From Selaginella moellendorffii (taxonomy: Eukaryota > Plantae > Lycopodiophyta), in contig NW_003314280.1 in the NCBI RefSeq assembly GCF_000143415.4, forward strand, positions 1,049,663 to 1,113,662: DNA of 64,000 bases. The letters are read 5' to 3'. Every line of letters begins with the position of its first letter. The stretch's first letter is position 1. The notes beneath the pieces are model-generated. The model saw only the letters and a program-made list of their open reading frames with translations, ran no database searches and was not told the origin of the DNA. A program made the position numbers and the translations under genes. This document shows, piece by piece, positions 31,083 through 48,868 of the stretch.

Positions 31083-34000
31083 ATGCCTGGGACGCAATGG
31101 GCGAGGCGCGCGGCCAGGGAATGCTTGGCTCGAGCTCGATCGCCGCCGGCATCGCAACGGGGCGGAGGAGGAGGGCGGGCAAGCACTGGCGAGGAAGTGA
31201 ATCTTGTCGAGCAGCAGCGTGGCTTGATCGCCGCGCTCCAGGAATGCAAGCAGTCTAGGGATCTCCAGCGAGGTCGCAGGCTGCATTCTCAGGCGCTCGA
31301 GAGCGGCGGCGGCCTTGTGCGTAGCATCTACGTCGCGACGACGCTGGTGGTTATGTATGCTCGATGCGGCAGCATGGAGGAAGCCCGGCAGGTTTTCGAC
31401 GGGATGAAATCCAGGAATGTGGTGTCGTGGACGGCTTTGATCCTCGGCTATGTGGAGAATGGAAGAAGCGAGACTGGCTTGGAGCTGTTCGAGAGGATGG
31501 AGAGGGAAGGGTGTAGAGCCGATGCTCGGACTTTCGTGGCCGGGATCATGGCCTGTGGGACTCTGGCAGCCAAGGAAGGTGGTCAGGGGAATTCGTTGAG
31601 CGATGGAAGAGTTCTAGCAGGCAAAGAAGATGCTTCTTCTGGAAGAGTTCTAGCAGCCAGAGAAGATGGTTCTTCACGGGAAAAGTCTTGGCGGGATGAG
31701 AAAGATGTGAAGAAGAGGATCAAGTTACAAGCTCTGGAAAGAGGGAGAGAGATGCATCGACGAGCTGCCGAGGCTGGCTGCGAGATGAACTTGTTCGTGG
31801 CGAATACTCTGGTGGACATGTACTCGCGTTGTGGGAGCCTGGTCAATGCTCGAGCAGTGTTTGAGAGGATGCCGTGTCACAGCTTGGTCTCGTGGACGGC
31901 ACTTATCCAGGGTTGTGTGGAGAATGGAGAAGAAGAGAGAGCGCTGGAGCTCTTTTCACGAATGCAAGAGTCGCGAGGAGGGTCTTTGCCGGATGCTCAA
32001 ACGTTTGTGGCCGTTCTCGCGGCGTGTTCTGCTCTGGCAACGAAAGAGAAAGACATATCCAGCAGCAGCAGCAGCAGCAGCAGCAAAGAGAGGAAAGCTT
32101 TTTTGAAAGAGAAGGCGCTGGAAACAGGACTGGTGCTTCATTCCGAGGCCGAGAAAGCTGGGGTCACCTCCAACATCTTTGTGGCAAACAAGCTTGTGGA
32201 TATGTACTCCAAGTGTGGGAGTATGGAGGATGCGAGAAGAGTTTTTGACAGGATGGCCTTCCACGACGTTGTGACTTGGACGTCTCTCATCCTGGGATAT
32301 GTAGAAAGCGGAGAAGCAGCATTGGGATTGGAACTCTTCGATCTCTTGGTGACATCTCAGCAAATTTTTCGAGATCCTCGGTTCTTCGTGGCTGGACTCA
32401 TGGCCTGTGCTAGTTTGGTGGAGACGAGCAAGGCCGACTGCCTGGAAAAACTGGCTTTTATTCACTCTCAAGCTGGGAAGAGCGGGTGTGACTCGGACAT
32501 GTTCGTGGCCAGCACTCTGGTGGATTTGTATGCCAAGTGTGGCAGCATTGGAAACGCTCGCGGGGTTTTCAATCGGATGCCTCAACGGGACGTGGTTTCC
32601 TGGACTTCTCTAGTTCTGGGATATGTGGAGAGAGGCCAGGGGGACATGGCTCTGATGCTTTTCTCGCTCATGCAACGTGAAGGTTGCGTTCCAGACGCTC
32701 GGACTTACGTCGCTGCCTTCATGGCTTGTGCGAGCCTGGCCGAGCATAAAGAAGAGTTACTAGATGGAAGAAAGGTCGAGGCTCTCCAGGAAGGAAAGCG
32801 TCTCCACTCGGAGGCTGTGAAGTGTGGCTTTCTCTCGGACAAGGTGGTGGCAAATTCCCTGGTAGACATGTACGCGCGCTGCGGAAGTATGGTGGAAGCT
32901 CGAAAAGTTTTCGACGAGATGCCGAGTCTAGACGTGGTTTCGTGGAATTCACTGCTGCTAGGATATGTTGTTAACGGGGAGAGTGAAGTGAGTTTGGAGC
33001 TGTTCGAGGAAATGCAACGCAAAGGCTGGGATCCGGACGCTCGGACTTTCGTTGCTGTTTTCAAGGCCTGCGGCAACCTGACATCCGAGAAGGAGGAATC
33101 GACGGCTGAGTGGCTCAAGCGAGGCAGTGCATTCCATCTTCAAGCTTCTCAGTGCGAGCTGGATTCTCACATCTTCGTGGCCAATAGTTTGATCGACATG
33201 TATGCCAAGTGTGGAAGCTTGGCCGACGCTCGAGCAGTCTTCGACAAAATGCCACTCCACGACTTGGTATCCTGGAACACGCTGCTCTCCGGCTACGCAG
33301 ACAATGGAGAGAGCGAGAAAGCTCTCGAAGTCTACAAGCTCATGCGCAAAGAGGAGAGCTCCTCGTGCCGGCCAGACGCTCGAACTTTTGTTCCACTCTT
33401 GAAGGCCTGCTCCAACACCGCAGCTCTGGAAACTGGGAGAGCCATCCACGGCGAAGCTGTGCGGTCGGGAGTGGAAAGCAGTCCATTCCTCGCAGCCTCT
33501 CTGGTGGATTTCTACGGCAAGTGTGGAGGAAACATGGCTCAGGCGGAGCAAGCCTTCGACGTGACTCCAACCAGGAACTTGACGCTGTGGAGCGCTCTCA
33601 TGGCTGGCTATGGTCGACTTGGAGACACGAACCAGGTACTTGGGCTGTTCCAGACGCTCGAGGAGACAGGCTTGCGGCTGGACGGAGCTACGTTTTGCTC
33701 GCTTCTCACCGCGTGTAGCCATGCCGGGCTGGTCGACCGGGGAAGAGAAGTTTTCCTCGTGATGGCTTCCAAGTATGGTGTTACTCCTGGCGTGGAGCAC
33801 TACCACTGCCTGGTGGATTTACTGGGACGAGCTGGGCTTGTCGAGGAAGCAGTGAGCGCCGTGAAAAAAATGCCGCTCGGGCCGAGCGTGGTGGCGTGGA
33901 AGACGGTGCTGGCTGCGGCTCGGAAGTGGCAGAAGGTGGAGATTGGAAAGATGGCGTTTCAAGCGTTGGCAGCGCTGGAGGTGGAGGTAGACGAGGATCA

Positions 34001-34109
34001 AGCTGGATCCACGTTTGCGTTGATGGCGAACATCTACGCTGGAGCTGAGATGTGGGAAGAACAGGCACAAGTTCTCAAGCAAAAGAAGAGCTTGTTCTTG
34101 GCAACTTAA
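31083..34109 (+). CDS. PLS-class PPR protein, E subclass (no DYW), long-loop L motifs
   Basis: Repeated P-L-S triplets (LVDMYAKCGS, DVVSW), ACSHAGLV, EHYHCLVDLLGRAG, E motifs; Arg/Ala-rich N-terminus; first in-frame ATG at 31083. Confidence 0.93.
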   Translation: MPGTQWARRAARECLARARSPPASQRGGGGGRASTGEEVNLVEQQRGLIAALQECKQSRDLQRGRRLHSQALESGGGLVRSIYVATTLVVMYARCGSMEEARQVFDGMKSRNVVSWTALILGYVENGRSETGLELFERMEREGCRADARTFVAGIMACGTLAAKEGGQGNSLSDGRVLAGKEDASSGRVLAAREDGSSREKSWRDEKDVKKRIKLQALERGREMHRRAAEAGCEMNLFVANTLVDMYSRCGSLVNARAVFERMPCHSLVSWTALIQGCVENGEEERALELFSRMQESRGGSLPDAQTFVAVLAACSALATKEKDISSSSSSSSSKERKAFLKEKALETGLVLHSEAEKAGVTSNIFVANKLVDMYSKCGSMEDARRVFDRMAFHDVVTWTSLILGYVESGEAALGLELFDLLVTSQQIFRDPRFFVAGLMACASLVETSKADCLEKLAFIHSQAGKSGCDSDMFVASTLVDLYAKCGSIGNARGVFNRMPQRDVVSWTSLVLGYVERGQGDMALMLFSLMQREGCVPDARTYVAAFMACASLAEHKEELLDGRKVEALQEGKRLHSEAVKCGFLSDKVVANSLVDMYARCGSMVEARKVFDEMPSLDVVSWNSLLLGYVVNGESEVSLELFEEMQRKGWDPDARTFVAVFKACGNLTSEKEESTAEWLKRGSAFHLQASQCELDSHIFVANSLIDMYAKCGSLADARAVFDKMPLHDLVSWNTLLSGYADNGESEKALEVYKLMRKEESSSCRPDARTFVPLLKACSNTAALETGRAIHGEAVRSGVESSPFLAASLVDFYGKCGGNMAQAEQAFDVTPTRNLTLWSALMAGYGRLGDTNQVLGLFQTLEETGLRLDGATFCSLLTACSHAGLVDRGREVFLVMASKYGVTPGVEHYHCLVDLLGRAGLVEEAVSAVKKMPLGPSVVAWKTVLAAARKWQKVEIGKMAFQALAALEVEVDEDQAGSTFALMANIYAGAEMWEEQAQVLKQKKSLFLAT

Positions 34110-36553
34110 GCTCTACTTCTTCCGAAACGCTGGAAGCATTAGCACAGGAGAAGCTACGAGCGAGTGCTCTGATTCTGGGGCCGCTCAAGGCATGCAGCAG
34201 CGCCAAGGATGGGAAGATCATCCATGGCAATGCCATCCAGTTTGGAGCGATTGCGAACCTTTACGTGGCCAGTGGTCTGGTTCATATGTACGCTCGATGC
34301 GGCAGCATGGTGGATTCGCAGCGGGTCTTCGATGGGATGGTCCAGCACGATGGGGTGTCGTGGAACTCGCTGATTCAAGGCTATGCCACCAATGGGGAAA
34401 TGCCGAGAGCGTTGGGCATTTTGTCGCTGATGATCTGGGAGAGTGAGAAGAGTTCTTCCGTGATTCCGACACCTCGGACCTTTGTCGCTGCACTCAAGGG
34501 GTGTAGCAAGTTGGCGGTGGAAGAAGATGGAAGGCTGGTCAATGGAAAGCTTGTCAAGGTTTCTGCGCTCCAGAAAGTTTCGGAGATTCACTTGGTGGCT
34601 GCGAAGTATGGAAGGACAGACTCGACAAGCGTTTTCGTTGGCAACTCGCTGGTGGATTTGTATGCCAAGTGTGGGAGCCTGGAGGATGCTCGTCGGGTGT
34701 TTGATCGGATGGATCATCGCGACAGGGTTTCATGGAACGTTTTGATGGCCGGATGTGCTTTTCACGGGGAGGAGGAGGCGAGTTTGGAGCTGTTCGAGCG
34801 GATGCTACTCCAGGGCTATGCAGCGAACTCTCGGAGCTTTGTCACGGCACTCAAGGCCTGCTCGAGTCTGGCAGAGAAGGAAGAAGCGATCAAGGGCTCA
34901 CGGGATGGACAGTTTGTGAAGATTGTGGCTTTGGAGAAAGCTATGGCTATACACTCGCAGGCTGAGAGACTTGGCTTGGATGTTTACATGGCCAGCGCAA
35001 TGATCAGTCTATATGCAAGGTGTGGAAGCATCGTGAACGGGCTAAAGGTTTTCGACAGGATGCTGTGCCGTGATCTCGTGATGTGGAACACGATGATTCT
35101 CGGGTGTGCCGAGAACCATGACGCGGAGCTCTCTTTGGAACTGTTCGAGGCGATGAGCAAGCATAGCTGTGAAGCTCCGAATGCTCGAACTTTAGTTGCG
35201 GTGCTCAAGGCATGCGTATATCTGGCCGAGAAAGAAGAAGAAGCGCAGGAGATTTGTGGGAAGAAGATTAGAGTCATGCTGCTCGAGAGAGGCATGGCTT
35301 TGCATGCTCGAGCCAAGGCAACCATGGAACTCAATGGCTTTCTAGCTTGCGCTCTCGTCGAGCTGTACTCCAAAAGTGGGAGCTTGGTGGACAGTATGGC
35401 CGTGTTCGAAGCTATGGCGCATGATCCAGATGTTACGTTGTGGACTGCTTTGATCACCGGGTGTGCTGACAATGGGGAAGAAGATCTAGCTCTTGAGCTC
35501 TTCTCTCAGATGCAAAGTCATGGAGGTTGTGCACCGGACGCTCATAGTTTTGTAGCGGCAATAAGAGCTTGCGGGTCTAGCTTGGCAGCAGCGAAAGAAT
35601 CCAGGGAGACGAAAGTGCTCGTGTGCGTGGAGAGAGGCATGGCTCTCCACTTCGAAGCTACGAAACAAGGATTTGTTTCGAACAAGTTCCTGGCCAGCGC
35701 TCTAGTCGACATGTACGTGAGATGCTCGAGCATGGACGATGCTCGCAGGGTTTTTGCTGCGATCCAGCGTCCGGAGGTGGCAACTTGGAACACACTGCTT
35801 CTGGGATACGTAGAAAGTGGGCAAGGGGAGCTAGCTCTCGAGACTTACGAGCAAATGAAAGCTCGCGGTGGTCTGGAACCGAATGCTTCGACTCTTGGCC
35901 TCGCACTGAGGGCCTGTGGAGTGGCGAGAAGATTGGAAACTGGGAAGAGAGTCCATGGTGAGCTATGCAGGAGAGGCCTTGAAAGCGATGCTGTTCTAGC
36001 AACGTCGCTCATAGATTTCTACGCAAAGTTTGGCAGTCTAGACAACTCTCGCCAAGTGTTCGACTCGGTTTCTACAAGGGACGTGATCACCTGGAACGCA
36101 TTGATAGCAGGATGGAGCAGCCAGGGGAGCTACACGAATTCTCTTGCATTGTTCTACGCCATGCAAGACGAGGATCTAAGGCCCAGCAGTGTCACCTTCG
36201 TCTCGCTTCTCAACGCTTGCAGCCATGCCGGGATGGTTGAGAGGGCGAGGAAGATCTTTCGTGCAATGGAGGAGTCGTCCAAGTTTGCCGTGACGCCTGG
36301 TATCGAGCACTATGGCTGCATGATCGATGTGCTTTGTCGAGCAAACCAGCTCGATGACGCAGTGGCTATGGTGCGAGGCATGCCTGTGGAAGCCAATGCC
36401 GTGGCCTGGACGATCATTCTCAACGAGTGCTGGAAGCGGCAAAACTTGGTGGTGGGAGCGCTTGCATTCGACGCACTACAGAGAATGGGTTTTACCACAT
36501 CCTCGGCCTTCACCTTGATGACCAGAACTTATGGAGCTGGACAAAGTTTATAA
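34052..36553 (+). CDS. PLS-class PPR protein, E subclass (short), long-loop L motifs; start codon unclear
   Basis: 833-codon open frame with PLS triplets and EHYGCMIDVL. No ATG before the first PPR motif; overlaps the previous ORF by 58 nt. Confidence 0.85.
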   Translation: MGRTGTSSQAKEELVLGNLSSTSSETLEALAQEKLRASALILGPLKACSSAKDGKIIHGNAIQFGAIANLYVASGLVHMYARCGSMVDSQRVFDGMVQHDGVSWNSLIQGYATNGEMPRALGILSLMIWESEKSSSVIPTPRTFVAALKGCSKLAVEEDGRLVNGKLVKVSALQKVSEIHLVAAKYGRTDSTSVFVGNSLVDLYAKCGSLEDARRVFDRMDHRDRVSWNVLMAGCAFHGEEEASLELFERMLLQGYAANSRSFVTALKACSSLAEKEEAIKGSRDGQFVKIVALEKAMAIHSQAERLGLDVYMASAMISLYARCGSIVNGLKVFDRMLCRDLVMWNTMILGCAENHDAELSLELFEAMSKHSCEAPNARTLVAVLKACVYLAEKEEEAQEICGKKIRVMLLERGMALHARAKATMELNGFLACALVELYSKSGSLVDSMAVFEAMAHDPDVTLWTALITGCADNGEEDLALELFSQMQSHGGCAPDAHSFVAAIRACGSSLAAAKESRETKVLVCVERGMALHFEATKQGFVSNKFLASALVDMYVRCSSMDDARRVFAAIQRPEVATWNTLLLGYVESGQGELALETYEQMKARGGLEPNASTLGLALRACGVARRLETGKRVHGELCRRGLESDAVLATSLIDFYAKFGSLDNSRQVFDSVSTRDVITWNALIAGWSSQGSYTNSLALFYAMQDEDLRPSSVTFVSLLNACSHAGMVERARKIFRAMEESSKFAVTPGIEHYGCMIDVLCRANQLDDAVAMVRGMPVEANAVAWTIILNECWKRQNLVVGALAFDALQRMGFTTSSAFTLMTRTYGAGQSL

Positions 36554-37539
36554 TGAGACTTCATTTATATCAAACACGTACAAGCAAGCTAGCTGTTTAG
36601 CTGGCGAGCCGATCCACATCATCGTGCAGGCCCTGTTTGATAATCAAAGCTCGAGGTTTGCTTTGTATCGTTCCAACAGGTACTACGAAGAAACTGTTAC
36701 AAGTGGCATCACTTTTGCAAGCCATAGAGACTCTTTTCAGCAGGTACCTTGATTTCTTAGTATTGTGCTTGTTATTCGTCCTTAACTTCTTTATAAAGCG
36801 TAAAGGTGGTGATAGTTTTTCAAGCCCTAATTAAGAGCGCCACTATCTTTGCTCGAGTAGAAATCTTTGTAAGTTTTTTCTTGGCTTAAATTTCAATTTC
36901 TGGTCTTATAGACTCAGCAGCAAGCTGAAAGAAGAAAAGTCAAAGTGAAACACTGAGCACGAGAATTTCAGTCAAGCTGTGATTTTTTATATATGTTTTG
37001 ATTTTACAAGAAAAAACAATGCAAGCAAAGATTTGGAGATATACTCTTGTTATTCTCAATTGTCAAGAAAAAAAAAGTGGAGTGCGTGCCTGATCCAAAT
37101 TTTAGGCCTTCAAACAAGCCCCCTCCCGAGATATCCCCGGAGCAAACGGCAATTATCCGTTTCATTCATTTCCTCCGGCAGCAAATAAAATAATATCAAT
37201 ACGGATGGGCTCGCTTGCTAGTACACGGAACCCAATACGAGTTGCGTATACCAAATCTGTTGATGACGCGGCGCCCGCCTTACGCAATCGATTGACGGTT
37301 TATTCACTCCTTAGATAGATGGACGAGTATTCCTCCCCTGAAAATATTTTAACCTTGATAAGAATGGCTACGAAAATTAGTGTGTTGATTCTTGTTCTTC
37401 CTTTCTAACTAATTCATTTTCTTTGAATCGAATTGGATCAAGGGATTTCTTTTTACTATGCTTGACACATATGTCATGATTAGAGCACGCTTTCTCTTCA
37501 ATGCGTGGGTTGATCCGGGCTGAGTCTTGCATGCTGAAA

Positions 37540-37790
37540 AACTCTGGTCATGGCGTCGATCGATGCTCAAACTAAAATCTGTTCGTTAATCGATGCAGCT
37601 CCTTATGCGGGATCTTAAGTCCTGGACGTCGATGATAGCCGCTTTTGCTTGCCAATGGAGATTCTCGCCGATCCAAGCATGGTCGCCTAGAATGCAATGC
37701 TAGCTGCGTATATTAGGAATAAGATTGTGTTACAGTCCGAGATGGAGGAAATTTCTACTGCCATGCCTGGATATTGCAAACCAGCAAAGT
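37540..37790 (+). pseudogene. Short PPR relic
   Basis: DLKSWTSMIAAFA- and NAMLAAY-like fragments. Confidence 0.35.
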
Positions 37791-38087
37791 CATAGTGGAA
37801 CACAGTAAGCTGGTCCCGCGGTATTGACTCTATCGCCATTATTTTGTCATTCGTTTTTACCAGTCTCTAGTCTAAAAGTAAAGAAATAACATCAAGAAAA
37901 ACTCAGAAAAATCATTTAGAAATCACAGTGTCTTTCTGAGTTCGTCTGAAATAAAATACGCTCCTCTTAGTGTACATATTTAGAGTCAAGGCTTAAAACA
38001 ACCAGCAACCACCGTTCCTCTCTCTCTCAAACCACAAGGAGTCCAGAAATAATTTAAGGTTATTGGATTGAACTAATGACTAATGTC

Positions 38088-38498
38088 TCAGTTCTCTCCT
38101 TTAGACAGCTTGCTTATGTCCGAGGCAGTAAGAGACGTTGCGTCATTCTTTCCGTCGAAGCACTTGACTTGGACGTCGCGCAGCGTGCCAGGATCCACAC
38201 AATGCACAGTCACAGCCACCACGTCCGGATTGATGCGCGGCTTAAAGTAGGAGCAAATCCCACACACCTTGCAAAACAGATGCTTGGTCTGGTGCGTCCC
38301 AAACGTGTAGAGCGAGAGCCACTCCTCGGAGCCGGGCTGAAGCCGAAACCTGGCCTCGGGAACAATGAAATGCGTGTTCCTTCGCATGGCACAATTGGAG
38401 CAATTGCACTCCCACACAACAACGCTGGCCGCGGCGTCCACCTCCCACCGCACGCGGCCGCAGTGGCAGCCGCCTTTGTGTGTCACAAGGCCCTCCAT
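38088..38498 (-). CDS. GFA / CENP-V family zinc protein
   Basis: GGCHCG, CNCSNC, FCKVCG motif set; 136 aa, intronless. Confidence 0.92.
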   Translation of the reverse strand: MEGLVTHKGGCHCGRVRWEVDAAASVVVWECNCSNCAMRRNTHFIVPEARFRLQPGSEEWLSLYTFGTHQTKHLFCKVCGICSYFKPRINPDVVAVTVHCVDPGTLRDVQVKCFDGKNDATSLTASDISKLSKGEN

Positions 38499-38607
38499 CG
38501 CTCTAGATCCACAAACACAAGCTCACTAGATCACTGAATTCTCTATACCTGAGGATAACGATGCCAAAATGAGAACGGTGTTTACCTATGGACTCTTTTT
38601 TTTATCT

Positions 38608-39839
38608 TTAGTATGATGACGCCGACCTCGATCGCGATGAGCAGTATGAGCTACGTCGGTACGAGCGGCCTCGTCGAGGGCTCCGGTAGGGAGAGTAGCC
38701 AGGCGACGCTGAGCGTTCCCTTCTGCCACGAGAAGATGGGGAGTATCCCCTCCTTGAAGAATGCCTGTACTCGCTGCGTCTCCTTGAGTAGGCTGTGGAA
38801 ATCAAACATGGAAGTCATCAAAGAGACGTAAGAAAAAAGGAAAGAAACAGAGGCTTGAGAAGCGAAGGAACTTACAGACTTCTCTCGCACTCCTCACGCC
38901 GAGGTACTTGCCAGGAGTTGGAGTCCGGGCGCGTTTTCTTTTGGCCTGCAACATAGAAGCTCATCAATTGATCGAGCTGCTTGTTCAATCAGTTTGGCTA
39001 GCTGGTTGGTTGGTTCCGATGATGTTTGAGACACCAAAACAGCTCTGGACGAGGGAAATAAGACAAACATAAGAGCATTTCAGAAAGAAGAAGAAGGAAA
39101 AAAAAAAAAAAAAAAAAAACAAGAGTGTCACATACACGAGGAAGAAAAAAAACAGAAAAGAAAAGGAGAGAAATGAGCTCTAAAGATGAATTTTTGTACC
39201 TTTTCCACGGTGATGGAGCGTCCATCCAAGTTGGACCGATGGAGATATTTGATGCACCTGTCGGCATCTTCAACTGTGTCCATCGTCACAAATCCAAAGC
39301 CTCGGGACTCTCTAGTAAGAGGATCAGTTACCAGGCAGCATTCTATAACCTGGTTGTTTCAATCGAAGGAGTGAATAACCTGGAAAGAAGAAGAAGAAAA
39401 AAAAAACAATAAGTAAAGGCTCACCTTGCCTTCCTTGGCAAAGTACTCTTCGAGCCATGACTCCGTCACTCTCGTCGAAAGCCCAGTCACATACAAGTTG
39501 TTACCAGGATTCGCAGTAACATCCCGGTCCCTGAGAAGAAGGAAAAAAAACCAAATCCAAGAGAGAAGAAAATCACAAAGAAAAGAGAATGCCATCGGCA
39601 TTTTGCCAAAGAAACACACCTGACGGGGCTTCGTGAAAGAGATCGCGGCGACGAGCTGTATCTGGGAGACGAAGAAACGAGAGGAGATTCTTGCTTCAAC
39701 AGCGAAGAAAAGAAGAGAAAGACACGCAAATTTCTTTACCTGTTGCGCTTCGGCGACCTGCCCTGAAAGATGATGAGAGAGAGAGAGAGAGAGAGAGAGT
39801 CATAGAAGCTCAAGGCGAGAGAAAGAACGCAAATACCAT
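38608..39839 (-). CDS. SR45a: SR45a/TRA2-like RS-RRM-RS splicing factor
   Basis: NPGNNLYVTGLSTRVT, RESRGFGFVTM, RSITVEKAKRKRARTPTPGKYLG, flanking RS-rich exons; ATG|GT first exon at 39839-39837. Confidence 0.88.
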
Positions 39840-39917
39840 GCTCGCGAGGCCCTCCAAGAAAAAAACCAAGGCGGTGCCCTAGATTTTAAACAACGGGTGA
39901 AAATGAACCTTTTTGCC

Positions 39918-39940
39918 AACCCTAACCCTAGCCCTAACCT
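39918..39940. promoter_or_regulatory. Telo-box-like cluster (AACCCT)n upstream of SR45a
   Basis: AACCCTAACCCTAGCCCTAACCT about 80 nt from the ATG. Confidence 0.6.
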
Positions 39941-40052
39941 CTGGGATTAGTCGTAATCAATTGGGATTAAGTTAATGTGTTCTTTTCCATATAAGTGTTT
40001 CTTTTTCTTCATATTATAAACTTTCATAAACTTTATCGAATTCTTTTGTATC

Positions 40053-41806
40053 TCAATTTAAACTAAGAATGTCCGCCACCCTGTACTTCTCTGGGTCTAC
40101 TAGTGACTTGAACTTGCCGCGGCCATTGAATTGGGCCGAGCCTTGTAAGCTACCATACAACTTCCCAAAAATCCCGTCTACCAGCAGTAGCCTGGGCTGG
40201 AAGGAGCTTACCTCAACATTTAGGAAACTAGGCCTTTCGTAAATTGGCCTGGAGATTTTGAAACTCAGACGAATGCGTTTGGCAACCTCCACTATCACCT
40301 GCAACCAAAAAACAGTTAAGCCTTCAACAATGAAGAACATAAAACCATCACCTCGTTTCTTGTCCGTGAGACCAAGAGATTGTTGAGAAAGTTCCAAGTT
40401 GTGGATTCCATAGGCATTTCCATCTGGTAAGGCAGAGATTAAGCGCCAGAAAACCATGCCTTCAGAGTAATACCTTGTTAATAACAAGCGTTCCTTGATG
40501 CTTGGTGCCACCGTCACTGCTCCAGGAAGATAACCACACAGTCTGGTCTCGATAGACAAGCCCGAGTTCCCTGATATACTGCGGAAAAAAAAAAACGTAA
40601 CTTCATAAAAATAAATGAAAGAGTACTCACAGTTGAGCTGCCTGTGGCAGTCATGATCCTCATGTTGAGCTGCAAGTCCCCGTCCCAAATGAGACAATAG
40701 CTCTGGTCGGGAGTACCGCGGAAATCGAATGTTTCACCGTGAGGGCCACGGATATGGGGATCTCCTCGAACTCCCGGCGAAGGTCTCAAAGCAGCGTTGC
40801 ACGGAGCACAGTCCTCCGAAGCAACGGTGCCGGAAACGTCGGCCGAACTGGCTCTGCAAACAGTGACGGTGGAGCCACCTTCGGCCATGATGTTTGGACC
40901 CTCAAGGCTCCCGGTGTTTTGGATGAAGGACGCTCCGCACACGTTGATTGTGCTCTCGTGAGCAGTGGTGGCTCCTCCAAGCTGGAAGAGAGAATAGAAA
41001 GTGAAAATTTTGAGACAGCACTTCAAGCTTACCGAAGCCGAGTTGTTCTCGTAAGTATTGTCCGCGAGGAATCCTGCCGAAGTGGCCAAGAACTCTAAGC
41101 CTCCGCCACTGAGACTAGCGATGTTGTGTCGAAAGGCCGAGCTTCTTATGTCCGCCTTGCTATTCTCAGAGACTCCAACAGCACCGCCAAAGCCAGCGTT
41201 GTTTTTCACGAACAGAGACTTGTAGATGTCGGCCGCACTCCCGTTTCTAACGCCAATAGCACCTCCGATGGAAAACTGTGAAACCAGCAAATACTCGTTA
41301 GTTGAGAAAGCTGGATGGCAAATATGTAACTCTTACCATGGCAACTTCGTTGTTAATAAAAGCGGCACTATTGACTTCGAGAGTTCCCCCGTCGGAGACG
41401 AGAATGGCACCACCGTCGTCGTTACCGGATTTACCATTCCGGAGCTCCAAGTTGTAGAGCGAGAGCCTTCCGCCCTCGCCTGAGACAGCGAGGTGACGAG
41501 ACTTGCGCTGGGCATCGATGTAGCAGCTCGCGTCTTTGCATGACTTTGCATGGCCAGTGAGCGTGACGCACTTCGTGATGGTCGGCAGCTCTTTGGTGAT
41601 GGTAATGGAGTGGCCCACGACGATCCGGCTGCTGGAGCGCAGAGCTTCGATCAGCTCTTGCTCGCTTTTCACGAGTCCTAAGATGAAAGTACATCGATCA
41701 AAAGAAACGTAGAAAAAGAACTGTGAAGTTTTGCTTTACCCGATACAAAAGTTGTAGACGTAGCGAGAAAGAGAGCGCATATCACGGCAGCAAATCGCAG
41801 CTCCAT
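40053..41806 (-). CDS. Secreted protein: GGA(I/V)/FxxN beta-helix repeats fused to a root-cap/LEA-related domain
   Basis: Signal peptide MELRFAAVICALFLATSTTFVS; GGAIL..FINN, GGAIG..FVKN, GGAVG..FRHN repeats; GDPHIRGPHGETFDF..YCL and VDGIFGKLY; multi-exon with consistent phases where checked. Confidence 0.8.
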
Positions 41807-42096
41807 AGCTCCCAAAGTCGTAACGCTGCTTGTTCTCGCCAATAGGAGAAGTTCTTACATGAACTATAGATCGACCGAGGCGTGAGTTTTCACGAGGAAC
41901 CACACTCTGGATGAGTGTTTCAGGTAGCCACATTTATGCTATACCGGCAAGGTGGAATTCCGAAGGCTAGCCACGAGTTCCAACCAATAGGCTTAAGCTC
42001 CCAAGTTTTGGTGCTACAAGTTAACAAGTTATTCAATCCTGCTGTTACTTAATTCTCCCTGGAATCAAATGCTTGTGTCAGTTCTTCTTCCAAACA

Positions 42097-42831
42097 CTAC
42101 CTGGAACGTAGTTTTCGCCCATGCTGGCACCCGATATCCTGACCGAATGTGTTGTTCTGAGGAGGAAAGTAAGTTCCAGGCCCCGGAAGCCCGCTATCCG
42201 GTCCTCGGTGCCACTTCCCTGTCATTGTGAAGGCCGGACCGCTCCTGCCAGCAACACGTTTGCCTCTGTCCGGGTTATACTGCGCAGGGCCTGGAGTGTT
42301 GTAAAAGTCGCCATAGACCGTCCGAGGTCCCGGGTTACACGTCCTCGATGGAGGAAACCTGTTGGCCATTGTAAACGAGGGACTCTGCGGCCTTGCCGAG
42401 TAGAAGTAAGTGCCTGGACCCGGAGCATCCGTGTCGTGCTTGGTGGTCCGCTTGGACGCCACAGTGAAGGCCGGCCCGCTGTTCTTGTTTGGAAGGGAGT
42501 AAGTGCCAGGCCCCGGTGTCACCTCGCTCAGGAGAAAACGTCTAGGAGTCCATGCGTTGGTGTTGCCTCGAGGAGATGGATGTCGCGAGCGTTCCAGCAT
42601 CCACATCTTCTCCAGGTCCAGGTTTGGAGTCCCCTTCGTGCTCAGGCTGAAAGCCGGTCCCGTTGGGCCGAGCCTTGGATGGTACATGCCTGGTCCCAGC
42701 TTCCAATCTTCATTGGGAGGTGGTCGACGCTTTGCAGCGAGGGTGAAGGCCGGAGGAGAACGGACAACCGGTTTTATACTGGGATTGTAAGCAGCTGGTC
42801 CAGGAGACCTGTCTTCCACCTTGTAGGACAT
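42097..42831 (-). CDS. SHIPPO-repeat (ODF3/STPG-like) flagellar/sperm-tail protein
   Basis: Six PGPGxY-type repeats alternating with (G)PAF(T/S) motifs. Confidence 0.88.
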   Translation of the reverse strand: MSYKVEDRSPGPAAYNPSIKPVVRSPPAFTLAAKRRPPPNEDWKLGPGMYHPRLGPTGPAFSLSTKGTPNLDLEKMWMLERSRHPSPRGNTNAWTPRRFLLSEVTPGPGTYSLPNKNSGPAFTVASKRTTKHDTDAPGPGTYFYSARPQSPSFTMANRFPPSRTCNPGPRTVYGDFYNTPGPAQYNPDRGKRVAGRSGPAFTMTGKWHRGPDSGLPGPGTYFPPQNNTFGQDIGCQHGRKLRSR

Positions 42832-42931
42832 TTGGATGCAGTGCTGCTCCTTCTAATTCGGCGGCTTCTGCAGAACACATAACTAAAGTTCTTGACAGTT
42901 ATAAGACAGTTGCCAACTTCACCTGAATCGT

Positions 42932-45234
42932 TCACGAAAAGAAAATATATAAGCATAGGATTGAACAGGGTAAAAAGACCACGAAAGCTGACACGTAGAG
43001 GGCGCTTCCCCAAAACCACATCAGCTCGACGAAGCTCCACAAACCGGCTGACTCTCTCGCCAGTATGGTTAAAACTACAAGTAGAGGAAAGCACGTAAGA
43101 GCGGGCGCAAGCACCGCGTTTACGCGAGAAATGACTCCAGACTTGGGCTTCCAGAGCGCTCTCCAAGAAGAACTCAAAGGCTGAGCAGAAAGGCACATAG
43201 GAACCAAAAGCAATGCACCGGCCAGAGCTACGGAGAAGTTTACGGCGGAAAGGATTCCCAGAGCAATGCCGGTTAGACCCAGAGTTAAGGATTTTAGTGG
43301 CACGTACCAATCATCTGAAGCGTGTGCATCAGATCTAAGACAAAAAACCGGAGCAAGGCACAAGCCGGACAGGAGAATCCAAACAGCCAACCTTGTGGGA
43401 GCAGAAGAAAATAGATGGAAAAGAATGGCTGGACAGATCGCGTTCCCCAGGGACCATGTCTCAACGAGAATAGCAACAAGGATTGCTTGAGTCCAGGAGC
43501 CAGGCGTAGCTTTGACACTAGTGCAGAGCGCTGCTGCCTGTATGGGAAAATTCGAGAGGAGGAGACCGAAGGGGATAATGTAGGTACTGATGGACACGAA
43601 TTTGTTGGGAGAGACCATGATGTATAGGAAAAGAGACTGATGGAACTTTTCAAGCAGGTTGTTTACTGATCGCAGAACACCTTCAATCAGCCTGCAAGCC
43701 ACCGGGGACTTTACGATCCCGTTCAATGTAGTCAAATGAAAGCTTACCTTCCGAAGTTCGTCAAGAAGTCCATATTATGCTCCAGATCTGTAGAGACCAC
43801 TTCCAAAGTTACAGCATCGAGTTGGAAATCTCGAAAGGCTCCATGAGAACCTGTTGGAACTCCTAGCATCTGCATAAAACACGTCAGTTCACATACTCGA
43901 CACGGTAAATACGTACTTGGTTCCAGCAGGATCTCAAGAGAACAGAAACTCCATTCACGTAGTCCTCAGCTGTAGTGAAGCTCGCTTTAGCATGAGAAAG
44001 AAATGCCTTCCGAAGCTCAGCAGCTTTTCTCCCGACAACCTCAAAGACGTATCCAACACTTCTTAGCCACTGCCAATCTTTGATCCTCGGCACACCCTCA
44101 AGCGTTAAATGGAACTGTTGCCGCCAGGAGACCAACAGGTTGACGACGCTGATCATATCCATGTTCGGCATCTGCCCGTTTGAGCCTTCAGCGTGGATTT
44201 CCAAAGAACTCACTTTAGTAGCACCAGCACCACGAGTAAACTCCAAGACAAACCCGGCTGTAATGCTTCCTGCTCGTTTGAAAAAAATGTCCCTGGAACT
44301 GTTACCATCCTGTGTATAGTGCATCCCCTCGAACGAAGAATCTGATACCAAAGGTTCATGGTACTCTTTCAACCACGCAGCAACTGCCGTGTACTTCTCA
44401 TACTTGCTGTCCGCGGCAACCCAAACGACGTCTTTTGCCAGCCAAAGAGTCCGACTTAGAAGATCTAGTAGCGACAGAGATAAACCCATGGCGATGGCGT
44501 TCTCCGCCGTAAGATTCTCCAACTCGAAGGGTGTAACCAGCACAATGGCCTCGTTGCCGTCCCCTTGATGAGCTCTGAGTATCCCAACCGCATTGACACC
44601 AGGAGTTTGCTCGCGTCCATCGACCAGGCAGTGCTTCCTGGCCTCGTAAGTATATGACGTCGAGAGAAACCCGAGTATGGAGAAGGACCGGGTTGGAGGA
44701 CAAAAACAATGAAAGTAGTAGTCGGCTCCAAGAGCATCCAAACGATCACCCAGCCACTTCCGAAAATCTCTGCACGACCAAAGAAAAAGATTAAAGTTTT
44801 CATAGACTGTGAGAGAGCAATAGCACTGACTTTTGAGGATCAGTGCTGCTCGAGAGTAGCGTTTGGATCTCGCGAGCAAGATCGTGCGCCTTCAAGGTAT
44901 CATAATGAGAGAATGTTGCTCGAGCCGAGCCTGGAATCACGAGATCGATCGGATAAAAATTGGAGAAGAAAAGTATTCAAACCTGGCAACAGCGCATTCT
45001 CGTCGACATAGACAGACTTCGCGAGCACTGGCAGGAGCATCAGCGACACGATCCCCGCAACGCAGCACACAAAACTGGCAGGGTATTCCAGGGAAGATTT
45101 TCACAGATGATTCACAACTAGAGATCGCCTCACCTGACGAGCGCAGCGTGGCGGACGATCAACACAGCAAGGCGCGCCAGCAATCGGCCTTTGAGAGGCG
45201 GCGCCTGCCGATCCTTCTCTCCATCAGCCCCCAT
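42932..45234 (-). CDS. GAA1: GPI transamidase component GAA1/GPAA1
   Basis: GDGNEAIVLVTP, WLAKDVVW, EGSNGQMPNMD, RSVNNLLEKFHQSLFLY, multi-TM C-terminus; multi-exon. Confidence 0.92.
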
Positions 45235-45280
45235 TCTCTTCTCAAGAACCCTAAAATATTTTTCCTTCCTGGGGAAATGT

Positions 45281-48200
45281 ATGAGCAAGTCTCTTCTCGT
45301 CGCGATTGGAAGCTGGAGGTATCCGATCGAGCAATGCACCAGGATCGCTCCCGGCGCTCCCGTGATCCTGGCGGCACTCAAGGCCTGTAGCGCTGTGAGG
45401 GATTTGGAGGCGGGCGCCAGGATCCACGCCTCGTTCTTGGAATCGAGTGGAAGCGGCGCTATCGCCAACAGCAATGTGGAGAACAGTGTGATCCACATGT
45501 ACGCAAAGTGTGGGAGCTTGCGCGATGCACGATCGGTCTTCGATTCCATCTCTCACCTCTCGGTGGTATCATGGAACGCTTTAATCTTTGGCTACGCAGA
45601 GAATGGAGGGCCGCGCGAGGCGCTGGAGCTCTTCCAGCGGATGCAAGACGATGGATTCTCGCCAAATCCTCTCACTTTCGTGGCAGCGCTCAAGGCCTGC
45701 GTGAGCTGCGCCGATGGAGAGGAGGCCCAGAGATTGGAGTGGCTGGAAAGAGGGAGAAGAATTCATAGCCAGGCTCTAGCAGCTCTAGCAAGAGGTGAAG
45801 AGCTCGGCTTGACGCTGGCAAACACGCTAGTTCACATGTACGCTAAGTGTGGCAGCGTTTTGGAAGCTCGGGAAGTTTTCGACAAGATGGTGGAGCGCGA
45901 TGCCGTGAGTTGGAACGCTCTCATGTTTGGATACGTGGAGGTTGGCCAGAGCGAGCAAGCGCTAGAGCTCTTCCGGCGGATCCACAAAGAACTTCTCCAA
46001 GGCAAGCCGAATGCTCTCACTTACGTTGCCGCGCTCAAAGCTTGTGCTACCTGTGCAGAGGAGATCCAAGACGAGGAGAATGGTCGAGTAGAGCGAGCAC
46101 AGTGGCTGGAAAAGGGAAGAGCGCTCCACTCTCGAGCTGTGGAGAGCGGGCATGAATCGGATTTGAAGGTGGCAAGCACTCTGGTGGACATGTACGCGAA
46201 GTGTGGGAGCTTGGAGGATGCCTGCCGGGTTTTCCAGCGGATGAAGAGCCACGACGTTGTCTCGTGGAATGCGATCATCATGAGCTATGCTCAAAGCGAT
46301 CGAGGTGAGACTGCTCTGAGGCTCTTCTCTCAGATGTTGGAGGCTGGTTTCACGCCTAACGCGCGGACTTTTGTGGCTGCTTTGCAGGCCTGTGGCGAGC
46401 TAGCGGATAAAGAAGGGCGGTGTGTCGAAGGCAAAGCTGCGAAGGCATGGTGCCTGGAGAGAGGTATGGAGATACATTCCCAGGTGGTGAGCAGTGGCCA
46501 AACTTGCGACATTATCCTCGCCAACAAGCTGGCGGACATGTACGCAAAGTGTGGAAGCTTGCAAGACGCGTACCGGGTTTTTGAGAGGATGCCTCTTCAC
46601 GATGTGGTCTCATACAACGTTATGCTGTTCGGCTACGCGGATGTGAATGAGGGAGACTTGGCACTGGAACTATACGATCGGCTGCAAGAGAAAGGTGTTG
46701 CTCCCAACTCTCAGACTTACGTTGCTGCTTTGAAGGCCTGTGCAAGCTGTGCAGTGAAAGAAGAAGGACGACAGGTAGATGGGAAACTTGTCAAAGTGAG
46801 GAACTTGGAAAGAGGAGCTGCGATTCACTCCGAAGCGAAAATCTCCGGTTTTGAAGCTGACATCAAAGTGGCAAGCACTCTGGTGGACATGTACGCCAAG
46901 TGTGGATGCGTGGAGAGAGCTTCACAGGTCTTTGACGGGATGAAGATCCGGGATGTGGTTTCCTGGAACTCCATCATTCTGGGATACACGCAGTGCGGTG
47001 AAGGAGAGTTAGCTCTTCTCCTTTTTGTTCGGATGCAAGAAGATGGTGTGACTCCGGACGGACTAGCTTTCGTTGCAGCACTGAAAGCGTGCTCCTGCAT
47101 GGCCGGGAAAGAAGAAGGAAGTAGAAGACCAGAAGACGGGAAGATTATCAAAGCTAGATGCCTGGAGTTTGGGAAACTGATCTACAGTGAAGCTGCGACT
47201 AGCGGCTATGGACCCGACAGCAAAGTTACTAACACAATGCTAGATACGTTGGCAAAGTGTGGTAGCATGACCGACTCTCAGAGGCTCTTCGAGAAGATCG
47301 TAGAACGAGACGTGGTCTCGTGGAACGCTATGATTCTCGGCTATGCTCAGTGTGGAGAACCCGAGCTCGGTGTGCTCTACTTCAGACGCTTGCTAGAGGA
47401 AGGTCTGGCTCCAAACGAGGTGACTCTGGTGGTGGTTCTGAAGGCTTGTGGAAGTATCGGGGGTCTGAAAGTTGGGAAAATGATTTACGACGAGTTTATC
47501 CTGGCCGGACTGGTTCAAGAGTGTGGAGCAATCGCAGGCTCTCTGATCGGTTTCTACGGTAAATGCGGTAGCATGGTGGACGCTCAAGAGGTATTTGATT
47601 CACTTCCTTACAAGCAGCTAGTGACTTGGAACGCACTTCTAGCAGGATATGCACACCAAGGAGATAGCCAACGAGTCTTTGAGCTATTCGAGAGCATGCA
47701 AAGTGGAAACGATCGAGTGGACATCGATGGCATCACTTTCCTCAGCCTTCTCAACGTGTGCAGCCACGCGGGCCTCGTTTCCAAGGGGAAGGAGCTCTTC
47801 GAACTTATGGCCTCGCCGAGCTACCACATCAAGCCGAGGATCGAGCACTACGCTTGCATTGTGGATCTCTTTGGCCGAGCCAATCACCTGGCCGAGGCAG
47901 TGGCCGTGCTCAAAACGATGCCTTACAGGCCGAGCCCCGCGATCTGGAGAACAGTCCTGGGAGCTTGCAGAAAGTGGAAGAACGTCGAGCTCGCCAAGCT
48001 CGCCTTCGAGGAGATCCAGAGACTGGACAGGAAAGACGGCTCGGCGTACGTGCTCATGGCCAACACTTACGCCGCCGCGGGAATGTGGGACGAGAGCCTG
48101 AAGCTCCACTCGTCGAGCAGGATCCAGGGAGCCGTGAGGAAGGCCGGGCAGAGCTGGTGGAGCGACGGGGCCGGGAAGCTCCACTGCTTCCTGGCGGGGG

Positions 48201-48556
48201 ACTCGAGCCACCCGCAGAACGCAGCGATCCAGGCCAGGCTCAAGAGCTTGACGATGGCGATGAAGACCGCCGGATACGTCCCCGGGCTGGAGAGCTCGCT
48301 GCTCCACAACGTCCCGGACGATGCCAAGGAGTCGGCGCTGTGCGGCCACAGCGAGCGGCTGGCGATCTGCTGCGCGCTCGTCAACTCGACCCCGGGGACG
48401 CCGATCCGCATCGTCAAGAGCCTCCGGGTGTGTGACGATTGCCACAAAGCCACTGCGATCATCTCCAGGGTGGAAGGGCGCGAGATCATCTGCCGGGACA
48501 TGAGCCGCTTCCACGTCTTCCGGGACGGGAGGTGCTCTTGCGGAGATTTCTGGTGA
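45281..48556 (+). CDS. PLS-DYW PPR RNA-editing factor (DYW:WW-type PG box, ends DFW), long-loop L motifs
   Basis: PLS triplets, E1/E2, AGQSWWSD, HSERLA, CDDCH, RFHVFRDGRCSCGDFW; first ATG at 45281. Confidence 0.95.
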   Translation: MSKSLLVAIGSWRYPIEQCTRIAPGAPVILAALKACSAVRDLEAGARIHASFLESSGSGAIANSNVENSVIHMYAKCGSLRDARSVFDSISHLSVVSWNALIFGYAENGGPREALELFQRMQDDGFSPNPLTFVAALKACVSCADGEEAQRLEWLERGRRIHSQALAALARGEELGLTLANTLVHMYAKCGSVLEAREVFDKMVERDAVSWNALMFGYVEVGQSEQALELFRRIHKELLQGKPNALTYVAALKACATCAEEIQDEENGRVERAQWLEKGRALHSRAVESGHESDLKVASTLVDMYAKCGSLEDACRVFQRMKSHDVVSWNAIIMSYAQSDRGETALRLFSQMLEAGFTPNARTFVAALQACGELADKEGRCVEGKAAKAWCLERGMEIHSQVVSSGQTCDIILANKLADMYAKCGSLQDAYRVFERMPLHDVVSYNVMLFGYADVNEGDLALELYDRLQEKGVAPNSQTYVAALKACASCAVKEEGRQVDGKLVKVRNLERGAAIHSEAKISGFEADIKVASTLVDMYAKCGCVERASQVFDGMKIRDVVSWNSIILGYTQCGEGELALLLFVRMQEDGVTPDGLAFVAALKACSCMAGKEEGSRRPEDGKIIKARCLEFGKLIYSEAATSGYGPDSKVTNTMLDTLAKCGSMTDSQRLFEKIVERDVVSWNAMILGYAQCGEPELGVLYFRRLLEEGLAPNEVTLVVVLKACGSIGGLKVGKMIYDEFILAGLVQECGAIAGSLIGFYGKCGSMVDAQEVFDSLPYKQLVTWNALLAGYAHQGDSQRVFELFESMQSGNDRVDIDGITFLSLLNVCSHAGLVSKGKELFELMASPSYHIKPRIEHYACIVDLFGRANHLAEAVAVLKTMPYRPSPAIWRTVLGACRKWKNVELAKLAFEEIQRLDRKDGSAYVLMANTYAAAGMWDESLKLHSSSRIQGAVRKAGQSWWSDGAGKLHCFLAGDSSHPQNAAIQARLKSLTMAMKTAGYVPGLESSLLHNVPDDAKESALCGHSERLAICCALVNSTPGTPIRIVKSLRVCDDCHKATAIISRVEGREIICRDMSRFHVFRDGRCSCGDFW

Positions 48557-48571
48557 ATCTTAGTCCATGCG

Positions 48572-48680
48572 TTGACTAATCAGTCAACATTGATGACTAA
48601 ACAGTCCGTAAATATTTTAGTCAATAGTCTTTGACTAGGAGTGTTAGTCAACGCTTTAAACTGTATGACAAGGCGTCAAC
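48572..48680. promoter_or_regulatory. W-box (TTGACY) cluster upstream of the lipase gene
   Basis: TTGACT/AGTCAA at 48572, 48582, 48619, 48631 and 48646, plus partial sites. Confidence 0.6.
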
Positions 48681-48868
48681 CCAAGTCAGCGACCACGAAC
48701 TTCGTTCTTTAGTGCGCCGCTACGGAGATTTATTCTTCCTGCGTGACTTCAAACCGGGGCAGTAAATTTCGGCACGAACTTTTTTCCAGACACCGGTGCG
48801 AAGTTATATTGCCGTGTCGCGAGAAGAACGAGCGGCTAAAGCATTGTGGAGCAACGAAAGCGACGAGC

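Follow-up and report, generated by a model that had tools for sequence, protein, structure and literature searches.

The internal L motifs of three PLS-class PPR open reading frames in the nuclear DNA of Selaginella moellendorffii carry extra residues between their two helices. We consider it probable that these residues are genuine translated inserts, that they belong to an old PPR subfamily of lycophytes and ferns, and that they go back to an ancestral module of 16 aa which may brace the motif. In plant organelles, RNA editing sites are recognised by PLS-type PPR proteins, which are also being engineered into programmable RNA editors. The weak point of these proteins is the L motif, which needs a MORF cofactor in seed plants and reads bases poorly.

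Long internal L motifs in three PPR genes

The window, that is, the whole stretch of 64,000 nt that was analysed, contains three PLS-class ORFs on the forward strand (genes A, B and C; Table 1), with Pfam PPR, PPR_2 and PPR_3 matches down to E 1e-100 and, by manual segmentation, 5–7 P-L-S triplets per gene. An earlier note on this DNA described all three ORFs as intact. Only gene C, which has both the E motif and the DYW domain, is fully so: the ORF of gene A stops within E2, and gene B has no ATG upstream of its first PPR motif. Gene C is also the only one of the three with E motifs and a DYW domain containing HxE and CxxC (Pfam DYW_deaminase, 6.4e-34; E_motif, 1.8e-10). It is 98% identical to an S. 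moellendorffii protein at NCBI of equal length (1091 aa), is covered by transcript-like contigs, and can be classified from its sequence architecture as a putative PLS-class PPR-DYW RNA editing factor.

To compare the motifs, the linker was measured as the residues from the Cys closing helix A of the L motif (...LKAC) to the Gly opening helix B (G..IH). By this measure, 14 internal L motifs have linkers of 13–62 aa instead of the canonical 8, and none of them has the 35–36 residues and the short A–B turn of a canonical L1. The count agrees with that made earlier from the letters alone, and the six long and three canonical examples quoted at that time are all present as quoted. The canonical spacing had been put at about 5, a discrepancy that lies only in the point from which counting starts. 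In all three genes a canonical first L (linker of 8 residues in A and C, 5 in B) is followed by the long internal L motifs, a canonical last L1 and then a canonical L2, which bears out the earlier statement that the first and last L are of canonical or shorter length. Only one linker in the window is exactly 24 aa long, and two are interrupted, one by a tandem duplication and the other by a microsatellite. A six-frame scan of the window found no further long-L copies outside genes A, B and C.

Table 1. Positions in the window of the PPR genes, their L-motif linkers and the DYW domain
Feature	Positions	Strand	Linker (aa)	Remarks
PPR gene A	31083..34109 (ORF start 31065/31083)	+		PLS triplets; truncated E motif with a weak Pfam E_motif match; DYW domain absent
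A, L motif 1	31557..31742	+	62	36-nt tandem duplication inside, at 31604-31675
A, L motif 2	32028..32126	+	33	(CAG)8.7 poly-Ser run at 32060-32085
A, L motif 3	32409..32447	+	13	
A, L motif 4	32730..32792	+	21	
A, L motif 5	33072..33122	+	17	
A, last L1	33411..33434	+	8	canonical
PPR gene B	34052..36553	+		PLS triplets; no E or DYW match (Pfam)
B, L motif 1	34505..34573	+	23	24-aa class, near consensus; helix-B Gly (residue 34) replaced by Val
B, L motif 2	34862..34936	+	25	
B, L motif 3	35216..35290	+	25	
B, L motif 4	35573..35635	+	21	
B, last L1	35918..35941	+	8	canonical
PPR gene C	45281..48556	+		complete PLS-E-DYW editing-factor architecture; 1091 aa
C, L motif 2	45701..45751	+	17	model: longer helix B, no hairpin
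C, L motif 3	46046..46114	+	23	model: helical extension
C, L motif 4	46394..46462	+	23	model: short hairpin
C, L motif 5	46742..46813	+	24	consensus linker; model: helix A through Lys, strands RQV and KLV, DG turn
C, L motif 6	47093..47170	+	26	fragment model: hairpin; whole-protein model: low-confidence loop
C, last L1	47450..47473	+	8	canonical
DYW deaminase domain of gene C	48272..48553	+		HSE ... CDDCH ... DFW; Pfam residues 998-1091

Short in-frame introns, or artefacts of the gene models, could in principle produce the same picture, with the mature protein having canonical L motifs; Selaginella introns are very short, and a 55-nt GT..AG joint does occur elsewhere in gene C. However, the transcript-like contigs of four studies, which start and stop at the limits of gene C and show GT..AG joints elsewhere, bridge all five of its inserts without any joint, so that for this gene the intron reading is already contradicted and spliceosomal introns are rejected. 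Two Pteridium transcripts, P0079 and P0121, likewise retain the inserts; the NCBI model equals gene C in length; and the protein sequence of the inserts is conserved although their synonymous sites are close to saturated. We therefore give this explanation almost no weight; the inserts are coding and unspliced.

Conservation of the insert and range of the subfamily

In 25 Selaginella paralogues the linker length has a sharp mode at 24 (+16 aa), with the consensus LA.KEEGK.V.GKLVK..sLE.G. The 35 Selaginella linkers that are exactly 24 aa long all have Glu16 and Leu31 as well as Lys or Arg at position 27, and 32 of them have Gly23, a degree of conservation that is not due to chance. A 24-aa linker with Leu12, Ala13, Glu16, Gly23, Lys27 and Leu31 is found in full in C motif 5 and, apart from the Val substitution in helix B, in B motif 1; the remaining 12 motifs of the window are shortened, lengthened or drifted from the consensus. 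The window genes carry mostly drifted copies of the ancestral insert, which would have had 16 aa and given a linker of 24 aa instead of 8. When three long L motifs were scanned in isolation against Pfam at E ≤ 10, no family was returned, and the insert thus contains no named domain.

Between the two best copies, pN was 0.18 and pS 0.64 in the insert, compared with 0.35 and 0.79 in the rest of the L motif, and pN/pS between paralogues, whose synonymous sites are near-saturated, was 0.28 in the insert versus 0.44 in the flanking helices. These substitution ratios point to purifying selection on the insert. Most of its exposed positions are free to vary, and its net charge is about zero. Within gene C, the inserts change faster than the remainder of the protein: they make up 73 of its 1091 residues and contain 6 of the 19 positions at which it departs from the near-identical NCBI protein (Fisher p 0.001).

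The 24-aa length and the key residues Glu16, Lys27 and Leu31 also occur in the lycophyte Diphasiastrum and are retained in the ferns Ceratopteris, Adiantum and Pteridium, so that sequence conservation, called for in the earlier note, holds across paralogues and species alike. Lycophyte-like plant data (SRR33208241) show the same linker length and key residues as well. A VAPYRIN-like gene in the same data is 52% identical to that of Diphasiastrum and 45% identical to that of Selaginella. No long L motifs were seen in the sampled seed plants or bryophytes. The idea that the insert is private to the three window genes or to lycophytes was rejected, because Selaginella paralogues and ferns carry it. 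Canonical L motifs are found in many Selaginella and in nearly all sampled Diphasiastrum PLS proteins, and 106 of 118 L motifs in Diphasiastrum have canonical spacing.

The order of canonical and long motifs seen in the window recurs in Selaginella paralogues, in Diphasiastrum P0013 and in Pteridium P0079. Complete DYW proteins with the insert include gene C and P0013, whereas by Pfam genes A and B and the fern proteins P0079 and P0126 lack the DYW domain. In a FastTree phylogeny of triplets on about 100 columns, from which the insert had been removed, 108 of 109 long-L triplets fell on one side of a single branch (support 0.89), and the terminal canonical triplets of long-L proteins shared this branch with the long ones. 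The long or canonical label changed 6 times on this tree versus 84–92 times with shuffled labels (five of 200 shuffled runs). The inserts accordingly mark a PPR subfamily, as had been proposed from the three genes, and on these alignments the long L appears to be the hallmark of an old PLS subfamily common to lycophytes and ferns, one that is greatly expanded in Selaginella.

Predicted structure and proposed role

In the AlphaFold2 fragment model (pLDDT 96.4, pTM 0.90; H71-87, E91-93, E96-98, H100-115), both L helices are lengthened and a two-stranded beta-hairpin with a DG turn is present. The hairpin recurs in the whole-protein model of gene C, and both models were built on paralogue alignments of 38 rows. 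The closest structure to the model is the RNA-bound synthetic PPR-DYW protein 9kfx (TM 0.85, rmsd 1.5 A), on which the fragment superposes with the helix-turn-helix stacking of a PPR solenoid, the hairpins being extras. In consensus copies the insert is thus predicted to form a small beta-hairpin: it would lengthen helix A by about one turn, start helix B three to four residues early and join the two through a two-stranded hairpin with a D/N-G turn. Degenerate copies were modelled as helix or loop, and in the whole gene C two of the five inserts were modelled without a hairpin while one differs between the two models. The extended helix and hairpin with a DG/NG turn suggested in the earlier note, displayed once per triplet, are supported for the consensus form; among the five inserts of gene C, hairpins are modelled in no more than two or three.

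We tentatively propose, as a possibility that falls short of being probable, that the insert is a rigid fin fixing both L helices relative to each other in a geometry competent for RNA binding, which in seed plants has to be imposed by a MORF protein. The fin would set Lys/Arg 15, 19, 24 and 27 beside the RNA phosphate path where it passes the C-terminus of helix A. Contacts with RNA phosphates are made by basic residues at position 13 and, in L1, at position 9 (PMC13324415; PMC13041630), and the insert begins a few residues beyond position 9 in the same helix. The L1 motifs of 9kfx are described as MORF-independent and similar to MORF-bound L1 (PMC13324415). Since the long L does not differ from ordinary non-seed L motifs at the base-reading positions (V/L/I at the fifth, D/N at the last), the insert would contribute to affinity or stiffness rather than to specificity.

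Alternatively, the hairpins could form a repeated docking surface for a partner protein, with one site per triplet in a row on one edge of the solenoid; the partner might be a DYW deaminase acting in trans, a further PPR protein or a non-seed cofactor. Many long-L proteins lack a DYW domain, as noted above, and ferns are reported to have many DYW-less PLS proteins together with short DYW proteins possibly acting in trans (PMC12548569). Glu16 and Lys/Arg27 are charged and invariant in charge, and in seed plants the L motif is the place where MORF docks (PMC13041630). However, there is no known partner, and the insert is found in complete DYW proteins as well; most of its exposed positions vary freely, and Glu16 and Lys27 could simply be paired in an internal salt bridge. 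We regard docking as unlikely. Equally unlikely, in our judgement, is that the insert is a functionless, tolerated decoration, derived from one ancient insertion in a surface turn that became fixed in one PLS lineage, was copied with triplet and gene duplication, and was kept only in so far as folding was undisturbed. The wide span of linker lengths in the window, the tandem duplication and poly-Ser microsatellite inside two linkers, the faster change of the inserts in gene C and the functioning of canonical-L proteins in the same plants, including the largely canonical Diphasiastrum, would all fit such a passenger. The persistence of the exact 24-aa length and the same key residues in both lycophytes and ferns, the lower pN/pS of the insert than of its flanking helices and the confident, compact predicted fold speak against it.

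Non-seed plants reportedly lack MORFs (PMC13386178, PMC8809517), in agreement with the earlier remark that none are known from lycophytes. Since canonical-L and long-L PLS proteins occur side by side in the same MORF-less species, editing in general does not depend on the insert. That it is a general answer to life without MORFs was rejected on the same ground, many Selaginella and nearly all sampled Diphasiastrum PLS proteins being canonical yet MORF-less.

Relation to known motifs and significance

The long L occupies the same place in the P1-L1-S1 triplet as the canonical L1 (35 aa in the motif set of Cheng et al. 2016, which PMC13386178 and PMC13324415 apply), and the two share the helix-A TFVAALKAC and helix-B G..IH signatures, the same flanking P1 and S1 motifs and, with canonical non-seed L motifs, V/L/I at the fifth and D/N at the last residue. 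They differ in length (about 51 aa versus 35–36) and in the conserved 16-aa module in the A–B turn, with its predicted longer helices and beta-hairpin, which canonical L1 lacks. The list of motifs quoted in 2026 (P, P1, P2, L1, L2, S1, S2, SS, E1, E2, E+, DYW and DYW:KP) holds no long-L type. No description of an L-motif insert was found in the literature searched, to which the motif-defining papers of Cheng et al. 2016 and Gutmann et al. 2020 did not belong, and 'LL motif' led there to dileucine papers only.

MORF/RIP bound to a designer PLS protein (PDB 5IWW/5IWB; Yan et al. 2017, via PMC13041630) acts, like the insert, at the L motif, where it orients helix B in a way that brings the recognition residues to the RNA (PMC13041630). 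By analogy, a module tying helix A to helix B could do the job of MORF in cis, and long-L plants lack MORF. However, MORF is an independent protein of alpha/beta fold that attaches from outside, whereas the insert is an intramolecular element of 16 aa, and in mosses canonical L motifs, too, function in the absence of MORF (PMC8809517). The SS-motif arrays of Selaginella PPR editing factors are likewise a lycophyte-prominent repeat variant, found in editing factors presumed to be MORF-independent (PMC8809517), but they drop the L motif wholly, whereas the long-L subfamily keeps and enlarges it, also in ferns. A far-reaching version, which we think improbable, would make the long L an eleventh PPR motif type, so far undescribed and predating the lycophyte–fern split. 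Its hairpin, as a built-in cis counterpart of MORF, would lock the RNA-binding geometry and touch the RNA backbone, and the motif would have been lost in the seed-plant lineage as MORF took over.

If the conserved compact L module holds, it would represent a further motif class, in a large subfamily, that present annotation profiles miss or split, and it would account in part for the unusual repeat lengths catalogued for PPR proteins of lycophytes and ferns. It would also provide a design element, open to testing, by which L motifs could be made stiffer with no cofactor and, if the cis counterpart of MORF is real, a ready-made route to cofactor-independent PLS editing tools. Even as a passenger, the insert would still be a clean phylogenetic marker of one ancient PLS lineage.

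Three PPR genes and their linkers

All three plus-strand ORFs, genes A, B and C, gave strong Pfam PPR matches. An earlier note had described them as three intact ORFs, which is fully true of gene C only, because gene A ends inside E2 and gene B has no ATG upstream of its first PPR motif, its first Met being residue 79. Gene C has the same length as an NCBI Selaginella moellendorffii protein and is 98% identical to it. A stop codon lies three bases ahead of the gene B ORF, and at this junction genes A and B may be a broken or fused tandem pair, a single spliced transcript or pseudogenes.

Features of the PPR genes and of related contigs
Feature	Position	Strand	Description	Linkers in order (aa)
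Gene A	31083-34109	+	PPR ORF, ends within E2 motif	62, 33, 13, 21, 17, then 8
Duplication	31604-31675		36-nt tandem, 2 copies, 91% match; gene A L-motif insert
Microsatellite	32060-32085		(CAG)8.7, giving poly-Ser; another gene A L-motif insert
A/B junction	34046-34109		End of A and start of B
Stop codon	34046-34048		Ahead of gene B ORF
Gene B	34052-36553	+	PPR ORF, other frame, overlapping end of A	23, 25, 25, 21, then 8
Upstream joint	45074-45134		59-nt CT..AC joint
Gene C	45281-48556	+	PPR ORF, 1091 aa, E motif and DYW deaminase domain (Pfam)	17, 23, 23, 24, 26, then 8
S-motif stretches	46143-46269, 46778-46904		MYAKCGS...
Gap	46322		2 nt missing, inside gene C
Skipped segment	47591-47645		55-nt GT..AG, P2 motif region of gene C
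SRR33208241 genes	L005:8991-12602, L005:15847-19035, L003:10001-13324		Long-L PPR genes in gene-dense DNA

The proteins were cut at the P1 anchors, and linker length was taken as the number of residues separating the terminal Cys of L helix A from the Gly that opens helix B (8 in canonical motifs). The earlier count of 14 long internal L motifs was reproduced in this way, as was the description of the first L and last L1 as canonical or shorter, which extends to L2. The insert linkers span 13 to 62 aa, internal triplets measure 108-155 aa versus 102-105 aa for the last triplet, and a six-frame scan of the window found no further long-L copies outside the three genes. The tandem duplication and the microsatellite, lying inside two gene A inserts, indicate that changes in insert length are tolerated. 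Gene C and its near-identical NCBI protein show 19 differences, 6 of them within the 73 insert residues (Fisher p 0.001).

Retention in RNA and predicted structure

Four studies contributed one run each, and the contigs of these runs were aligned to window positions 45000-48800. The contigs are transcript-like, since they total ~30-56 Mb per run, their pieces begin at 45280/45301 and stop at 48565, which are the gene C limits, and they contain true spliced joints, among them one over the 55-nt gene C segment described below; the upstream joint, seen in a contig of run X1 and matching a minus-strand GT..AG intron of the gene upstream of gene C, supports an RNA origin. All five gene C linkers were bridged colinearly, each in two to four runs, and no splice joint occurred at any of them in these contigs. 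Short-sided joints elsewhere matched over 20-30 letters and appear to come from paralogue contigs that match in part. Long L motifs are also present in Pteridium aquilinum transcripts (EukProt P0079 and P0121). On these gene C and fern data, the possibility that the insert is an in-frame intron, which the earlier note had proposed checking against RNA, was rejected.

The same contigs showed other features of gene C. The 55-nt segment was skipped in contigs of runs X5 and X8 and kept in X1 and X6; since 55 nt is not divisible by three, splicing would put the E and DYW parts out of frame. The name of the NCBI counterpart, 'isoform X1', hints at annotated isoforms. The 2-nt gap, found in one contig of run X1 and in none of the other runs, would mean either a frameshifted allele or faulty assembly. 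Summed contig depth was about tenfold higher at the two S-motif stretches, which likely reflects many PPR paralogue contigs matching conserved words rather than higher expression.

An AlphaFold2 model of a 301-aa gene C fragment (S1, two long triplets and P1), built on an alignment of 38 equivalent fragments, scored pLDDT 96.4 and pTM 0.90. In its consensus L, helix A is about one turn longer than usual, reaching the Lys of A-V-K, and is followed by a loop E-E-G, a strand R-Q-V, a turn D-G and a strand K-L-V; helix B begins at Val, three residues ahead of the canonical Leu. The helix extension and hairpin with a DG turn envisaged in the earlier note are thus predicted for the consensus L; the hairpin is absent from the 17-aa linker and one 23-aa linker of gene C, which became a long helix B in the whole-protein model (pLDDT 86). 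That model again placed a hairpin at the 24-aa linker and a shorter one at the other 23-aa linker, whereas the 26-aa linker was a loop with pLDDT <50, as against a hairpin in the fragment model. The closest structure to the fragment was the RNA-bound synthetic PPR-DYW protein 9kfx (TM 0.85, rmsd 1.5 A), ahead of the MORF9-bound designer PLS protein 5iww (TM 0.68). Isolated long L motifs matched no Pfam family.

Conservation, taxonomic range and descent

Thirty-five Selaginella linkers measure exactly 24 aa and give the consensus t-s-L-A-a-K-E-E-G-K-q-V-d-G-K-L-V-K-v-e-s-L-E-K, in which Glu16 and Leu31 are invariant, Lys/Arg27 is present in 35/35, Ala13 in 33/35 and Gly23 in 32/35. A comparison of C motif 5 with B motif 1, the best-preserved copies in the window, showed almost saturated synonymous sites; pN 0.18 versus pS 0.64 in the insert points to protein-level constraint, over 16 codons only, and the rest of the L motif gave pN 0.35 and pS 0.79.

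Among the best 120 homologues of gene C, 69 of the 84 L motifs in 25 Selaginella proteins were long, their lengths peaking sharply at 24, and Diphasiastrum had 3 motifs at exactly 24 and 71 of its 74 at spacing 8. Spacing 8 was found in 124 of 125 Cryptomeria motifs, 33/33 in Ginkgo and 25/25 in bryophytes. A second search, seeded by a long-L triplet of Pteridium P0079, recovered long L motifs from Ceratopteris richardii (~9), two Adiantum species (~8) and Pteridium (~13), and no true case among 18 gymnosperm or 113 angiosperm motifs. The fern linkers again have mode 24 and retain Glu16, Lys27 and Leu31, so the insert is conserved across both paralogues and species. The 24-aa class also occurs in Logan proteins of run SRR33208241, whose plant probably represents a third lineage of lycophytes, judging from a VAPYRIN-like gene adjoining a long-L gene (identity to Diphasiastrum 52%, Selaginella 45%, seed plants <40%). 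Its contig L005 carries a pair of PPR genes within 7 kb, a clustering like that of the Selaginella window. Canonical and long PLS proteins exist side by side in long-L plants: among 56 motifs of 12 further Selaginella proteins only 2 were long, and P0013 was the sole carrier found in Diphasiastrum.

In a FastTree of 321 P1-L1-S1 triplets with insert columns removed, the long/canonical label changed 6 times, versus 84 to 92 in five of the 200 label shuffles. A single branch (support 0.89) held 108 of the 109 long triplets (Selaginella 57, SRR33208241 25, ferns 22, Diphasiastrum 4) together with 25 canonical ones, nearly all of which come first or last in the proteins that carry the long triplets, and none of the sampled seed-plant or bryophyte triplets. 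Genes A-C, P0013 and P0079 have an identical architecture: the long L motifs are internal, preceded by a canonical first L and followed by a canonical last L1 and then L2. Because the tree is short and quick-built, a single origin predating the lycophyte-fern divergence is treated as suggestive only.

No long-L type is among the motif names cited by a 2026 survey, L motifs have 35 or 36 aa according to a structure paper of 2026, and a 2022 design study chose motifs 'on their average length'. No description of the insert was found in the full-text literature searched; specialists running PPRfinder on Selaginella may well have met it already.

Possible roles of the insert

On binding to L motifs, MORF proteins rotate helix B towards the inside, which brings the recognition residues within reach of the RNA (PMC13041630). 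The authors of 9kfx, a protein that needs no MORF to bind RNA, credit this to L1 motifs already in the MORF-bound shape (PMC13324415). Basic side chains that touch RNA phosphates sit at position 13 and, in L1, at position 9 (PMC13324415, PMC13041630). The insert starts a few residues past position 9 in the same helix, carries conserved Lys/Arg at four positions and, in the model, lengthens both helices and joins them by a hairpin. The fifth and last residues of long L motifs are those of ordinary non-seed L motifs.

The hairpins could present a series of docking sites to a partner, for example a DYW protein acting in trans; we consider this unlikely, and give the same chance to the insert being a tolerated passenger. 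A strong functional claim is disfavoured by the near-zero net charge of the insert and by the canonical-L proteins of the same plants, as well as by the wide length range, the repeats within inserts and the excess of differences there. Our preferred reading, held tentatively, is that the insert would serve as a cis-acting brace alongside the RNA backbone, adding stiffness or affinity but not specificity.
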